Source of the DNA: Pocillopora damicornis
Taxonomy: Eukaryota
NCBI RefSeq assembly: GCF_003704095.1
Contig: NW_020844169.1
Coordinates: 310,001 to 368,244, forward strand
DNA: 58,244 nt
Direction of reading: 5' to 3'
Numbering within the stretch: the first letter of the stretch is position 1; the number at the start of each line of letters is the position of its first letter. Shown one piece after another: positions 8,464-25,075 of this stretch. The notes under the pieces were generated by a model, which saw only the letters and a list, made by a program, of their open reading frames with translations, was not told the DNA's origin and ran no database searches. The translations under genes were made by a program, and so were the position numbers.

Positions 8464-9930
8464 TCAAATTCCACTAACAGCATTTGCAAGCTCTATGCCG
8501 GTGAAGACAATGCCAAGAACCCCACAGACGATGCCAAAAACTATCACATAAACCCTGGCTATGATGTTGTACCATCTCAGCTCTTTCCATTTCAGAACGA
8601 TGTGAAAAACACAGGGGAATATAAAACAAAGACATGTACCTGTAAAACTTCCAACCAAACCCATGAATAAGCCAAAATGAGGCACAATAATGGCCATGAA
8701 GAGGCCAAAGGATAAGACAAGTGGGCGTGACAGCAAGATCCATACCCAGTGATACTTTGTCTCTCGCTCCAGGTGGGGGAAGTATGGTAGGAGTTTGTGA
8801 TCAACAGTTTCCAACACTATGTAGCTTACAATGGGGAAAGCTGTAAACACATTGGTCACAACCAAAGCATTAGCCAGAATGTAGAAAGCCTGATCGATCT
8901 TGAGGTTGACAGTGATAGCCTGGTTTGTGTCCTCTCCAAATCGCAGCACAGGAAGGAGGCCAAATGCCACTTTCACAATTGCAGCCAGTAGAAAAGCCAC
9001 ATTCATCATCATGGGGTACTGTTCAGGGCGTCGCATACTTCCCTCTACCCCTGGGAAGACAGCATGGGCTGTATAACTGAAGACAATGACACCAAACCCA
9101 ATGGGGAATTTACGAATGTCAAATCCAGGAACTTTGTGAATAGACATGTCCTTGTACTTTGTTATGGAATATATGATGATTGTCATGATCGACGACATCA
9201 GTGCAAAGACGGATATCATGCTGATCCAAGCAATGACTGACACACGGCGTAGGAAGAAGCCTGGGAGAGCAATGCAGGCACAGATGGAGGACCATGTGTA
9301 GATATCAAAATTCAATGATTTATACTTGCTCAGGATATCGCTAAATATGGTACCAAGCAGAACAAGGTAAGAAATTACCCCTCCAAACATCTCACAGAAC
9401 TGTACCACGCTCACAATCCGGTTCCCCCACCCGGGCCATACGGCTTCCCCGACCTCCGGGTAGTTAACTCGGACCCGTTTCAACATCTTTGTCTGCTTAG
9501 ATCTCTCATACAGACACTCTATCAACAGCTTGCCGGTGTAGCAACAAAGAAAGGCGATTTTCGCGTTAGCAGCTACGGCCGCCCAACCTCCCATACGCAC
9601 CGCATAGGGTACCCCAAGGATACCTGTGCCTTGAATGAGGTTTGTGACGTTCCAGCCAGCAAGAAACGCAGAGGCACGTCTGTCATCGGACGGTTTCTCT
9701 AACAACGAAACGGTCATGGTGGCTGATTTCAGATTTTTAATGCTCTGAGAAAAGCCAGATCTAGGAGAACCTCCAACTACACTTGAAGAGATTGGGGATT
9801 TCTGGTCGTTTGACGCAGACAACAGATGCGAACGTTCGTCCAAAGGTACAACCGTTGGTTGGGGTGCTGCAGGATCTTGTTCAGTCATAGCGATGCCTTC
9901 TTCTTCGAGCGAGGCCGCTTCAGACGCCAT
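8464..9930 (-). CDS. VIAAT/SLC32-like amino acid transporter, copy 1 (488 aa, intronless CDS)
   Basis: Uninterrupted ORF with AGWNVTNLIQG (VGAT has AGWNVTNAIQG), CCYTGKLLIECLYE, FSYTAHAVFPGVEGSM, VPHFGLFMGLVGSFTG and about 11 hydrophobic segments. Confidence 0.92.
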   Translation of the reverse strand: MASEAASLEEEGIAMTEQDPAAPQPTVVPLDERSHLLSASNDQKSPISSSVVGGSPRSGFSQSIKNLKSATMTVSLLEKPSDDRRASAFLAGWNVTNLIQGTGILGVPYAVRMGGWAAVAANAKIAFLCCYTGKLLIECLYERSKQTKMLKRVRVNYPEVGEAVWPGWGNRIVSVVQFCEMFGGVISYLVLLGTIFSDILSKYKSLNFDIYTWSSICACIALPGFFLRRVSVIAWISMISVFALMSSIMTIIIYSITKYKDMSIHKVPGFDIRKFPIGFGVIVFSYTAHAVFPGVEGSMRRPEQYPMMMNVAFLLAAIVKVAFGLLPVLRFGEDTNQAITVNLKIDQAFYILANALVVTNVFTAFPIVSYIVLETVDHKLLPYFPHLERETKYHWVWILLSRPLVLSFGLFMAIIVPHFGLFMGLVGSFTGTCLCFIFPCVFHIVLKWKELRWYNIIARVYVIVFGIVCGVLGIVFTGIELANAVSGI

Positions 9931-10781
9931 TTTTATGCGAAGGTTCTGTTTCTTCCTTCTTTTGCTGTTATATCTGTTTAGTAACCCGTGTTGCTAAGAA
10001 TCGGCGGTGCGTTCTCAGCAAGTTCTTTTTTTAACGCAAAGTTCGCACGTTCGATTGCGACCACTACGCACGCTTGGACTAGCCAGACACAAATATTGAT
10101 TTGTACATGTACCGCGTGGTAGTGTTGCGTTACCATTTATTGTTACGTCACAAAATAAAAATAAAAGATTATTTGTATCCCTCAGAAGTATAGTTTAAAC
10201 CCGTTGGGGATGTTGAATTGTAAAATATGTTACTGCGCTTTTGAAATCGATTTGATAAACGTCTTTAAATATTCCTGAAATGATTTAAGATGGGCTTGTC
10301 TTCCACATCTACAAATGCTAACAAATCAATGGCCAAAATTCCCACCAGCAGGTATCTGAGGTTTGATCTATGGTTTGATCTGTGGTTTGATTTTTTCTCG
10401 TAATTAGTAATTTATTCTGGCCTTTCACCAAGTCACTTGTAGGGTTTTGAATTTCAAATTTTTTGCTCCCTTCCCTCAATTAATCTCTTGAGGACATTTA
10501 TTCACTTCTACCTTAATCTTCAAGTTCGAGTTACGTTGTCGTTACAAATTCTCAAGAAGTGGCTGAAGCAAAGGGGCATGTGGGAAGTATATGAGTTTCA
10601 AAGGGTAAATATTGAGTCACGAACAAAACTTGAAGTCAGAATTCTTTCACGTATGGCTGAAATAAATCCGATCACGTCTCTTTTATTTCCGCTTTTTTTA
10701 AACCCTGAACGGATACACAAGGGTTTGTTGCCAACTAGTTTCAACAGCGATTTATGTAACAAAAAACATTTAAATCTACTC

Positions 10782-22640: not shown

Positions 22641-23398
22641 AGGCGAATTAAAATGGATTCTTTATTTATTTCAGGCTTTTTTACTGCGATTTTGTAATCT
22701 TACTGCTCACCGGCTAGGATTTTATCTTTATTTGTTTATCATCGTCAGTTCAAACAGTTTAATTTATTTTCATTTCTTAGTTATCAGTACCTATTGTTGT
22801 ATTTCTTGCTATGCTAAGTATGCCGACGAGACAGAACTCGGTGTTCCTGTTTTCTATTGTTATTTCGGTCATTTATCGGTCAATTTCGAATACAAAAAAG
22901 TTATTAGAGGAACTTTTGAAGTGTAATTTTTTAGAGGATGCCGGACTCTTGCGCTGAATTTGCGGGGTTTTCTCTGTGCTGAACACGTGGTCAATTGTTG
23001 TAACATGGTATCAATATTTGCGTGACGTAGACCGCATGCAGCGATTTATGACATGTAATACGTGAACTGAGTTTTTCACAAACCGACGTTGTTTTGGTTT
23101 TCGATCCAATATGTCTTAAGAAATAGGCATAATCACTTTCAGTGCATAAAATGGTTCACGTTTTAAGCCTGGTTGTTAGGGGACTACACGCGAGATACAG
23201 TCGCGAAACTAGTAACGAAAACTTGGAAAACCAGTCTGACTTGGTGAACGTGCGACAAACCGGACCGATGGTCTCCGTATTTCCGCGCGTTCATCGTCGT
23301 ATCTCTATACAGAATCAAACAACCGTTGTGCCAAACGGAGTACTTGTTGCTCTTGTAAGGAGATAAAAGTCTGAGAAGAACAGTCCTCAAATCAAAGA

Positions 23399-25075
23399 AT
23401 GGACGAGGAGAGTACGGAAATGAACACGATTTCGGTGACTGCGCTCCCGTGTTCTAGCACAGCTCCATCGGCGACTACTGTGATAAAAGAACCAGAGTTA
23501 GTAACAATCCTCGAGGACATGCCTTTGACAAACGAACAGATCGAAGAAGAGCAAGATCTATTGGAAGAAGCCGAGGATGAGTTCGAGCCGAATGAAAACA
23601 CTCCACTCATTCGATCGCACGAAACTCTAGAAAAGAGTGACTCAAGTTTCTTCACACACAACAGCAAAAGTTTCACGACAACTTTCACAACGAGTCAGGC
23701 ATCCTTATTCATCCCTTCGTTCCAGTTTTCGTTGTATTCTAGCATAGTATCAATCTCGCGGTCTCTAAATCAACGATCTGTGGCCCTCACGATTGACGAC
23801 AGAAGTAGCCAAGACTCGAAATCGAAATCAACAACCTTGTTAGAGAAGTTGTCAGAAGATGGCCAAGCAACGACCATGCTTGCGCTATGGAACATGATTA
23901 ACATGATCTTTGTTAGCACTAGTGTTCTAGCTATGCCCTATGCGATCTTCCTGGGAGGATTCGCAGCTCTGTTCCTAATTTTATTCATTGGATTTCTGAC
24001 TGACATCACTTCAGTTCTTCTTGTTGGCTGCCTTTACGAAATCTCACCGAAAAGCCGGCTTCGCAAACGAGTCCGAGCGAGTTATGCCGAGATTGCAGCG
24101 CACGTTTGGGGACCAGTGGGTGGGTGGATAGTTGATTTCGTAACCGTGAGCTTGTCATACTGCAGCTGTGTTCTGATGGTGATGGTTCTCGGCAGTAGCT
24201 TCATGGAACTGTTCAAGGAACTGTTCATGTTAAACTTAAAGGAATGGTGCTTGATCTGTGCACTGGCCATGTTACCCACAGTTTTCATCAAAAGACTGTC
24301 CATTCTTGCCTGGCTAAGTATGCTAGCTGTAGTAGCAGTGTTTATTATTGCCTTTATTCTGTTAGGTTTTACTCTGGGGGATTCGAACTCTTGGACATTA
24401 GACAAAATTCCTTCCTTTAACATTAACACTTTTCCAGTTAGTTTAGGAATTATTATGTTTTCATACTGTGGCCATACAGTATTTCCTGGAATAGAGGGCT
24501 CCATGCAGAAACCCATGAAATATAAAAGTGTCACGCATCGGGCATTTATCTCCGTCACGGCAGTGAAATTTTTAGTTGGGCTTTTCTGCTGCCTCACATT
24601 TGGTAGCAACACCAAGTCAATTGTGATCATAAATCTCAGTTTGTCATATGGCTCAATTCTTAGCAAAATAGCAACAGTGTTGGTTATCATAAATATTTAC
24701 TTTTCATACCCTCTTAATATGTTTGTTGTAAGTGGAACATTAGATATAATTCTTTTGCCAAAGTTTCCCCTCTGCTACAATCACAAGCGTTACAATTATT
24801 TGTGGATTCTCTTCACTCGCACTTTCCTGGTCCTCTCAACACTTGGTATTGCTGTAGCTGTACCCCATTTTGGGCTGCTGATGAGTATATTTGGAAGCTT
24901 GTTTGGAGCTTGTATCACCATGATTTTCCCTTGCCTATTCCATTTGCAGCTTAAATGGAACAAGTTAACTTGGTATAAGAAATTTTGTGAGATGCTTATA
25001 GTGTTATTTGGGATAGTTGCAGGCACATTAGGTTTGAGTTATTCCTCTATTGCCCTGAAGAATGCCTTGCACTAA
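23399..25075 (+). CDS. Divergent VIAAT/SLC32-like transporter, copy 5 (558 aa, long acidic N-tail, intronless CDS)
   Basis: Aligns with copy 4 (CLYEISPKSRLRKRVRASY, FSYCGHTVFPGIEGSM, VPHFGLLM), but TM1 reads ALWNMINMIFVSTSVLAMPYA. Confidence 0.88.
   Translation: MDEESTEMNTISVTALPCSSTAPSATTVIKEPELVTILEDMPLTNEQIEEEQDLLEEAEDEFEPNENTPLIRSHETLEKSDSSFFTHNSKSFTTTFTTSQASLFIPSFQFSLYSSIVSISRSLNQRSVALTIDDRSSQDSKSKSTTLLEKLSEDGQATTMLALWNMINMIFVSTSVLAMPYAIFLGGFAALFLILFIGFLTDITSVLLVGCLYEISPKSRLRKRVRASYAEIAAHVWGPVGGWIVDFVTVSLSYCSCVLMVMVLGSSFMELFKELFMLNLKEWCLICALAMLPTVFIKRLSILAWLSMLAVVAVFIIAFILLGFTLGDSNSWTLDKIPSFNINTFPVSLGIIMFSYCGHTVFPGIEGSMQKPMKYKSVTHRAFISVTAVKFLVGLFCCLTFGSNTKSIVIINLSLSYGSILSKIATVLVIINIYFSYPLNMFVVSGTLDIILLPKFPLCYNHKRYNYLWILFTRTFLVLSTLGIAVAVPHFGLLMSIFGSLFGACITMIFPCLFHLQLKWNKLTWYKKFCEMLIVLFGIVAGTLGLSYSSIALKNALH

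Follow-up and report, generated by a model that had tools for sequence, protein, structure and literature searches.

An old anthozoan tandem array of VIAAT-like transporter genes in Pocillopora damicornis with a conserved dileucine-type motif in the N-terminal tails

Results

Five intronless Aa_trans genes form a tandem array

Within a 58,244-nucleotide stretch of the genome of the coral Pocillopora damicornis (NCBI RefSeq assembly GCF_003704095.1, contig NW_020844169.1, positions 310,001 to 368,244 of the forward strand; henceforth the window, numbered from its first letter) lie five genes, copies 1 to 5, that resemble VIAAT, the vesicular transporter for inhibitory amino acids (also VGAT or SLC32A1). 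A prediction made from the letters of this DNA had described them as an amino-acid transport set of lysosome-related organelles, each member bearing an acidic-dileucine sorting motif in its N-terminal tail, rather than as neuronal loaders of γ-aminobutyric acid (GABA), and had named symbiosomes or digestive vacuoles as the obvious compartments. When we recomputed the five open reading frames (ORFs) and every tail motif named in that prediction, including YELV of copy 4 and EEQDLL of copy 5, all were present where they had been placed (Table 1). The five uninterrupted ORFs are the sole long ones in the 58 kb besides one antisense ORF within copy 5, and the paralogues are 36-65% identical to copy 1.

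All five proteins match the Pfam family Aa_trans (PF01490) with E-values of 1e-62 to 1e-71 and scores of 210-241 bits (cut-off 25.6), and each match spans the entire membrane domain (profile positions 2-404 of 410, or more); a protein atlas search returned nothing beyond Aa_trans. Structure prediction was carried out for copy 3, the best conserved of the five copies, whose closest protein comes from Stylophora pistillata. In the AlphaFold model (58 homologues; mean pLDDT 86.4, pTM 0.82) 11 helices adopt a LeuT-type fold, the second transmembrane helix (TM2) is followed by a short beta-hairpin, and the tail is disordered (residues 1-68, pLDDT below 50). Its top Foldseek matches were LAX3/AUX1 and SLC38A9 (probability 1.00, TM-score 0.75-0.80 on the target), and the closest PDB structures by sequence were SLC36A1 (E 4e-12) and SLC38A9, with no VIAAT structure among the entries in that sequence search. 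Human VIAAT has a beta-sheet in the cytosolic loop after TM2 (10.64898/2026.09.12.751155), and its N-terminus is cytosolic and disordered (10.64898/2026.09.24.754290), so that by homology the coral tails, and hence their motifs, would lie on the cytosolic side.

The array predates the split between stony corals and sea anemones

The arrangement of the genes is itself conserved. Four Aa_trans genes within 15 kb of the Desmophyllum pertusum genome repeat the order and orientation of copies 5-4-3-2 (identity 81% for copy 5, 84% for copy 4, 84% for copy 3 and 85% for copy 2), and the same assembly also has a copy 1 orthologue; copy 1 is 84-85% identical to its orthologues in Oculina and Desmophyllum. 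Nematostella has adjacent orthologues of copy 3 (75% identity, XP_001635936), copy 4 (66%, XP_001635866) and copy 5 (50%, a 552-residue neighbour), followed by a ceramide-synthase gene on the minus strand, named here by the Pfam label (TRAM_LAG1) of that Nematostella neighbour. A local tblastn comparison of the window with fragments of the Nematostella locus gave four ceramide-synthase exon matches (E 1e-6 to 8e-19). Synteny with both species makes the array older than the split between stony corals and sea anemones, and the array and its ceramide-synthase neighbourhood are a very old microsyntenic block. The divergent pair formed by copies 3 and 4 also recurs with a spacer of about 420 bp in Nematostella and of about 770 bp in Desmophyllum, and on these grounds the spacer of the coral pair is a candidate shared bidirectional control region or promoter.

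Desmophyllum pertusum is an azooxanthellate deep-sea coral and Nematostella is non-symbiotic, and both keep the array together with its motifs. Within the library of papers searched, our literature search for SLC32 or VIAAT-like genes in connection with symbiosomes or alga-hosting cells found nothing beyond a table for the non-symbiotic coral Tubastraea, in which two SLC32-annotated transcripts are enriched in aboral tissue (PMC9357087). The array is not specific to symbiosis, and neither its sequence nor its distribution ties the cluster to it.

The array belongs to an animal lineage separate from VGAT

To place the five genes, we drew on an exhaustive profile-free search that returned 3,816 relatives, the key representatives of which were named by cluster look-up. 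A tree of 75 proteins (IQ-TREE, C20; support given as bootstrap/SH-aLRT) was rooted on chytrid and streptophyte-alga proteins, which we take to be AVT1-like; yeast AVT1 is absent from the tree. The animal sequences form a superclade (100/98) that splits into Group I (98/93) and Group II (99/96). Group I holds an all-bilaterian VGAT clade (100/100), with Ciona, bird, fish, wasp, beetle and a rotifer relative, as well as a sea-urchin VIAAT-like pair and most of the coral's other paralogues. Group II contains one clade of jellyfish proteins, another that includes copy 5, and a further one (86/96) that unites copies 1-4 with anthozoan orthologues and flatworm proteins. The fungal and algal representatives are the outgroup to all 65 animal sequences, and orthology of the cluster with AVT1 was rejected on this ground. 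With Ciona VGAT as the query, the best match in this genome had 35% identity and no VGAT orthologue was found; VIAAT has been found only in Bilateria (preprint 10.64898/2026.09.08.749565). The five genes are neither VIAAT nor AVT1 orthologues, and the name "VIAAT-like" is taken from best hits.

Other contigs of the same genome carry at least eight more paralogues of the Aa_trans family, all intronless and with 28-34% identity (Table 1). Several of them, on contigs C870, C3580, C1383 and C2202, have Ser-Gln at the positions of VIAAT S319 and Q320 and group with true VGAT, features by which they would be better candidates for a VGAT-like role than the cluster.

Transport-site residues differ from those of VIAAT

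We took the roles of individual residues from two 2026 preprints on the structure of VIAAT (10.64898/2026.09.24.754290; 10.64898/2026.09.12.751155), with positions anchored by motif in database-derived VGAT sequences, not in the human sequence, and read across an L-INS-i alignment. Copies 1-4 keep N127, Q130, G131, E213, Y221, F315, S316 and K351, among which E213 in TM3 is the proposed proton-coupling site of VIAAT, and carry the changes A128L, F133G, T217G/A/I, T271V, H274L, S319A, Q320H, F322V, H344F and K389N. At the four positions of the aromatic GABA cage (F133, Y221, F315 and F322; 10.64898/2026.09.24.754290) copies 1-4 read G, Y, F and V, two of the four being kept, and copy 5 reads S, M, F and V. 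Neither putative chloride site of VIAAT (Cl1: N127, Q130, T271, H274 and K389; Cl2: S319, Q320 and H344; 10.64898/2026.09.12.751155) is intact in copies 1-4, which read N, Q, V, L and N at Cl1 and A, H and F at Cl2. The view that the cluster genes are not the GABA loader is upheld by these residues, in that the F133 and F322 cage residues and both chloride sites are lacking, and by the position of the genes outside the VIAAT clade (100/100). At positions 133, 320, 322, 344 and 389 the coral proteins match, or nearly match, the fungal, algal and protist outgroups, and hence it is the coral genes that are conservative there and VGAT that is derived.

Copy 5 departs furthest from this pattern. 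It has Leu for E213 and Met for Y221, states shared with its closest relative in the residue map (P0126), and has also lost Q130 and G131, the Gln-Gly of TM1. The claim that all five genes encode transporters is doubtful for a copy that has neither the proton-coupling Glu nor the substrate Tyr; copy 5 may be a non-transporting member, or one of altered function, in which canonical transport has perhaps been lost. Its tail contains a Ser/Thr-rich insert of roughly 50 residues, and the gene is still kept from Nematostella to corals.

The original prediction had also contrasted a His in TM6, found in all five copies, with a Gln in vertebrate VGAT, and had likened it to the GHxVFP of vacuolar AVT1-type transporters. 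The individual readings are largely correct: the five copies read AHAVFPG or GHTVFPG, the fungal and algal AVT1-like representatives read GH[AS]VFP, and VGAT has the Gln in Ciona, bird and fish (FSYTSQIF), though not in the wasp (FSYTSHIF). As a vacuolar marker, however, the His fails, being the majority state at the Q320 position (76 of 131 sequences, outgroups included), probably ancestral, and present in a VGAT as well. Braconid wasp proteins named vesicular GABA transporter (P0138 cluster) have His instead of Gln at this position of the proposed Cl2 site.

A dileucine-type motif is an island of conservation in the tails

The tails of the five paralogues can hardly be aligned, as had been noticed from the sequence, and the Glu and first Leu of the motif account for two of the three tail columns that are invariant among them. 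When the tails are shuffled, the loose form [DE]xxxL[LIVM] arises in 7-48% of trials per tail (product over the five tails about 3e-4) and the strict form ExxPL[LIVM] in 0.5-3%; because the copies are related paralogues, its presence in five of five shows conservation and not five independent events. A broader sample gives the same picture. Of the 111 anthozoan homologues whose tail is complete, the loose form is present in 89 (shuffles predict 22.8) and the strict form in 45 (shuffles predict 1.2), usually 52-66 residues before the Trp-Asn (WN) of TM1. In an alignment of 115 tails the Glu (conservation 0.70) and first Leu (0.87) stand out as an island from surroundings of 0.15-0.35. The form seen in copy 1, E[RHQ][ST]HLL, occurs in about 20 orthologues, 58-64 residues before the WN motif.

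Conservation in orthologues was a point on which the original prediction had staked itself, and the motif is kept there: the Desmophyllum orthologues of copies 5, 4, 3 and 2 read ENTPLI, ERTPLV, EDAPLL and EKSPLV, and the Nematostella orthologues of copies 3, 4 and 5 read EESSLL, ERTSLL and EQTPLL. Of seven paralogues outside the cluster in the same genome, three have the loose form and one the strict form, and since so few carry it, the motif is a feature of the lineage of the cluster and not of the whole family. Two further candidates were rejected as extra signals, ESVPLV of copy 2, which has no match at that site in the Desmophyllum orthologue, and EEQDLL of copy 5, which is absent in Nematostella and has Asp at -1 (counting back from the first Leu), inactive in OCA2. 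YELV of copy 4 is conserved in part only, as YELR in Desmophyllum and YEMI in Nematostella.

How such a motif can act is known from melanosomal proteins. OCA2, tyrosinase and TYRP1 have in common the restricted consensus ExxPLL, which binds the adaptor complexes AP-1 and AP-3 (PMC3418312). In OCA2, AP-3 needs the Glu at -4 and AP-1 the Pro at -1; AP-3 tolerates Ser or Ala at -1, and binding is abolished by Asp at -1 or Gly at -2 (PMC3418312). The OCA2 signal is functional 70 residues from the membrane, although a generalisation cited in the same paper has membrane-distant signals as typical of internalisation rather than of lysosomal targeting (PMC3418312). Copies 2, 3, 4 and 5 have the strong form, with Glu at -4 and Pro at -1, and copy 1 has His at -1. 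The reading of ExxPL[LI] as a putative adaptor signal is accordingly supported, as it matches the melanosome-cargo consensus. The further step, that the tag marks a lysosome rather than a neuron, does not: VGAT is itself sorted by a dileucine-like motif in its N-tail, E39EAVGFA45 in the human protein, which directs recycling via AP-2 and, when mutated, AP-3 (PMC5770824). In tails of the VGAT clade, ExxxFA precedes TM1 by 56-68 residues (Ciona, birds and one further protein) or by 91 (a beetle); since this motif is functional and similarly spaced from TM1, the tag cannot separate a lysosome from a synaptic or secretory vesicle. The braconid wasp VGAT proteins have no such ExxxFA motif.

What the coral motif would support is that adaptors sort these proteins to an internal compartment, and to this extent the earlier inference is sound; synaptic-like and secretory vesicles rely on dileucine signals and AP-3 as well. 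The positional match of the coral motif with the ExxxFA of VGAT suggests that the two signals may share common descent. Acidic dileucines also occur near TM1 in two chytrid (AVT1-like) tails, and a distant Group I paralogue (C2813:428414-429601) carries EETPLI only about 25 residues before TM1, which hints that the signal either predates the split between Groups I and II or was gained twice.

Published expression data

A VIAAT homologue of Nematostella, LOC5506413, is expressed in oral neurons (10.64898/2026.01.28.701697); a library search by gene and protein accession linked it to no particular paralogue. Another Nematostella gene labelled "VIAAT", NVE24524, is up in a neural lineage (PMC10415408). 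The quantitative PCR primers given for NVE24524 (PMC10415408 supplement) have no match at the Nematostella array locus, and the forward primer encodes Ser-Lys-Gly-Gly-Tyr-Met, which resembles Lys-Ser-Gly-Gly-Tyr-Met in one of the coral's own Group I paralogues but does not resemble the cluster genes. The primers thus rule out NVE24524 as one of the three array genes, an exclusion that covers that gene only. The cited expression data put the products of the cluster in no particular cell type.

Further features of the locus and of the genome

Copy 3 has another in-frame ATG, 138 bases upstream of its start (17881-18018), from which the protein would gain 46 residues and reach 522; the shorter form is favoured because the orthologues measure 480-484 residues. 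Two smaller ORFs that overlap copies 3 and 5 (Table 1) are most likely by-products of coding-strand composition and not genes. Elsewhere in the genome, the two paralogues on contig C2202 are arranged head to head, and a second tandem cluster (C386:11352-19069) comprises three or four related transporter genes, broken by assembly gaps, two copies of which are nearly identical over their first 300 residues.

Table 1. Features of the array in the window (positions counted from its first letter) and paralogues on other contigs of the same genome (contig:positions)
Feature	Position	Strand	Description	Basis
Copy 1	8464-9930	-	Intronless Aa_trans gene, 488 aa; scleractinian duplicate	ORF; PF01490, E 3e-67
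Copy 1 tail motif ERSHLL	9820-9837	-	Residues 32-37; His at -1, not Pro	
Copy 2	13413-14873	-	Intronless Aa_trans gene, 486 aa	ORF; PF01490
Copy 2 tail motif EKAPLI	14745-14762	-	Residues 38-43	
Copy 2 second motif ESVPLV	14850-14867	-		
Small ORF	16418-16816	-	132 aa, other frame, overlapping the 3' end of copy 3	
Copy 3	16450-17880	-	Intronless Aa_trans gene, 476 aa from ATG at 17880	ORF; PF01490
Copy 3 tail motif EETPLI	17779-17796	-	Residues 29-34; in disordered tail	
Copy 3/copy 4 head-to-head spacer	17881-18558		678 bp; candidate shared promoter	Gene coordinates
Copy 4	18559-20052	+	Intronless Aa_trans gene, 497 aa	ORF; PF01490
Copy 4 YELV	18661-18672	+	Upstream of ERTPLV	
Copy 4 tail motif ERTPLV	18700-18717	+	Residues 48-53	
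Copy 5	23399-25075	+	Intronless Aa_trans gene, 558 aa, long tail	ORF; PF01490
Copy 5 extra motif EEQDLL	23546-23563	+	Asp at -1	
Copy 5 tail motif ENTPLI	23594-23611	+	Residues 66-71	
Small ORF	24082-24690	-	202 aa, antisense to copy 5	
Ceramide-synthase (TRAM_LAG1) exons	29798-32601	-	Downstream of copy 5	tblastn with Nematostella locus fragments
Paralogue elsewhere	C870:41342-42538			
Paralogue elsewhere	C3580:268311-269507			
Paralogue elsewhere	C1383:19414-20622			
Paralogue elsewhere	C2202:60003-61172			
Paralogue elsewhere	C2202:63209-64402			
Paralogue elsewhere	C2813:428414-429601			
Paralogue elsewhere	C469:1038691-1039647			

Discussion

We favour, with moderate confidence, the reading that this ancient tandem array of anthozoan genes encodes proton-coupled amino-acid transporters which adaptors sort to acidic internal compartments. 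The array consists of SLC32-like transporters of the AAAP/Aa_trans type, with a LeuT fold, and their lineage (Group II) is the sister of the group of true VGAT. Copies 1-4, which retain the Glu of TM3, the substrate Tyr and the luminal-gate Phe, are predicted to couple transport to protons through that Glu and to have a wider pocket (Gly for Phe133, Val for Phe322 and Gly, Ala or Ile for Thr217) without the chloride sites; their substrates are probably neutral amino acids other than, or besides, GABA and glycine, and the pH gradient of an acidic compartment would drive the transport. The disordered cytosolic tail would present its one conserved Glu-x-x-Pro-Leu-[Leu/Ile/Val], about 50-60 residues before TM1, most likely to the clathrin adaptors AP-1 and AP-3 and possibly to AP-2. 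Adaptor binding would in turn route the protein from the Golgi or an endosome to an internal acidic organelle, whether an endolysosome, a storage vesicle or a secretory vesicle.

Several observations weigh against this reading. The motif lies far from the membrane, as is more typical of internalisation signals, the signal of OCA2 being an exception. Copy 1 departs from the consensus with its His at -1, and the Leu-Val of copy 4 is weaker than Leu-Leu or Leu-Ile. About 20% of the 111 anthozoan homologues have no recognisable motif. The residues on which the transport model depends, Glu and Tyr, are missing from copy 5, and the proton coupling, sorting and transport ascribed to Group II proteins are predictions only. 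Transcription counts in favour of the reading, in that 65-87% of the words sampled from 15400-21300 are present in eleven RNA runs from three studies (eight labelled PolyA, three cDNA), but this result refers to assembled contigs only and, the genes being intronless, may include carry-over of genomic DNA.

Several other explanations deserve consideration. The array might instead supply the secretory vesicles of neurons or gland cells, as the cnidarian equivalent of VGAT, with the dileucine serving synaptic-vesicle recycling. The AP-2 and AP-3 sorting of VGAT through a dileucine-like motif in its N-tail (PMC5770824) speaks for this, as do the equal distances from TM1 of that motif's ExxxFA form and the coral motif, the presence in Nematostella of GABA-positive neurons and of oral neurons that express LOC5506413, a VIAAT homologue linked to no particular paralogue (10.64898/2026.01.28.701697), and the name VIAAT that orthologues bear in databases. 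We nonetheless consider it unlikely. Two of the four cage residues and both chloride sites differ, the neural gene NVE24524 is not among the three array genes of Nematostella (PMC10415408 supplement), the paralogues with Ser319 and Gln320 that group with VGAT are better candidates, and five paralogues are many for one transmitter.

The original prediction of a lysosome-related-organelle set, and not of GABA loading, survives in part. The genes are indeed not VIAAT and ExxPL[LI] fits such a set, but neither the tag nor the TM6 His is diagnostic, and the choice between lysosome and neuron is not decided by either of these two sequence arguments. In its most specific form, a dedicated set on symbiosomes or digestive vacuoles that moves amino acids between host and alga, we judge the idea very unlikely. 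The symbiosome is an acidic, lysosome-like compartment, and a pocket unlike that of VIAAT, in genes that are not its orthologues, would be compatible with such a role, as would the fit of ExxPL[LI] to the cargo consensus of melanosomes and lysosomes (PMC3418312). However, the azooxanthellate Desmophyllum has the array and its motifs, even copies 1 and 2, which are scleractinian duplicates, and the array is found in the non-symbiotic Nematostella as well, so that the symbiosome idea gains no support from its distribution; nothing about the array sets symbiotic species apart. In Tubastraea, which is non-symbiotic too, aboral tissue is enriched in SLC32-annotated transcripts (PMC9357087), and the TM6 His is uninformative on location.

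A plasma-membrane location, with the motif merely tuning surface abundance through AP-2 endocytosis, is similarly improbable. Relatives of the SLC36A1 type are active both at the cell surface and in lysosomes. Although the tendency of membrane-distant signals toward internalisation (cited in PMC3418312) would suit a motif about 50-60 residues before TM1, the Glu at -4 and Pro at -1 favour AP-3 and AP-1 and not AP-2 alone (PMC3418312), a distal ExxPLL targets OCA2 to an organelle (PMC3418312), and VIAAT and AVT1, the closest relatives that have been characterised, act as proton antiporters of organelles.

Our preferred reading, of adaptor-sorted transporters of acidic internal compartments, can be extended into an evolutionary proposal of three parts, which taken jointly we regard as rather improbable. 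Group II would represent the ancestral animal state, a proton-coupled loader of neutral amino acids into endolysosomal organelles, sorted by ExxPLL. The bilaterian GABA transporter would have been derived from it by narrowing of the pocket through Phe133 and Phe322, by gain of the chloride sites and by decay of the tail signal, in the same position, to ExxxFA. At least one member of the array would, in symbiotic corals, additionally work on the symbiosome membrane.

The family and the type of signal are already known, and the five genes add new members. Because the cluster represents an old lineage of its own, in which the substrate pocket differs, the label VIAAT should not be read as a function. 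The conserved adaptor signal, matched in position to that of VGAT, offers a testable handle on the sorting of these proteins, and the match bears on the possible origin of synaptic-vesicle transporters from endolysosomal ones. The main outcome for coral biology is a negative one, in that nothing in the sequence or distribution of the array ties it to symbiosis. The division into Groups I and II, the very old microsynteny and the positional match between a canonical and an atypical motif are of moderate interest.

Among known systems, the array has in common with VIAAT/VGAT the Pfam family, the 11-helix LeuT fold, a disordered cytosolic N-tail, a cytosolic hairpin after TM2, eight site residues kept in copies 1-4, and a tail motif of the acidic di-hydrophobic kind that is similarly spaced from TM1. 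It differs in forming a separate clade, in its altered cage and Cl1 and Cl2 sites, and in the canonical form of its motif, ExxPL[LIV], as against the atypical ExxxFA of VGAT. With AVT1-type proteins it has in common the GHxVFP of TM6, Gly at F133, Val at F322, Asn or Ser at K389 and the Glu of TM3, states that were inherited from a common ancestor and therefore do not mark a shared location; the AVT1-like proteins differ in having Tyr or Cys at K351 and Phe or Leu at Y221, and have no special kinship with the cluster. OCA2 (in its LL1 signal), tyrosinase and TYRP1 have the same Glu at -4 and Pro at -1 as copies 2-5, and OCA2 is likewise a multi-pass transporter whose signal sits in its N-terminal cytosolic domain, tens of residues before the first helix; these proteins are unrelated to the coral ones, however, among which copy 1 reads His at -1 and the motif of copy 4 closes with Leu-Val. 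Finally, SLC36A1 (PAT1) and SLC38A9 are the nearest solved structures by sequence, SLC38A9 also being among the nearest by fold, and like the transporters proposed here they are proton- or ion-coupled amino-acid carriers of acidic organelles, but they belong to other SLC families, with only 15-20% identity, and work in another direction, in lysosomal export or sensing.

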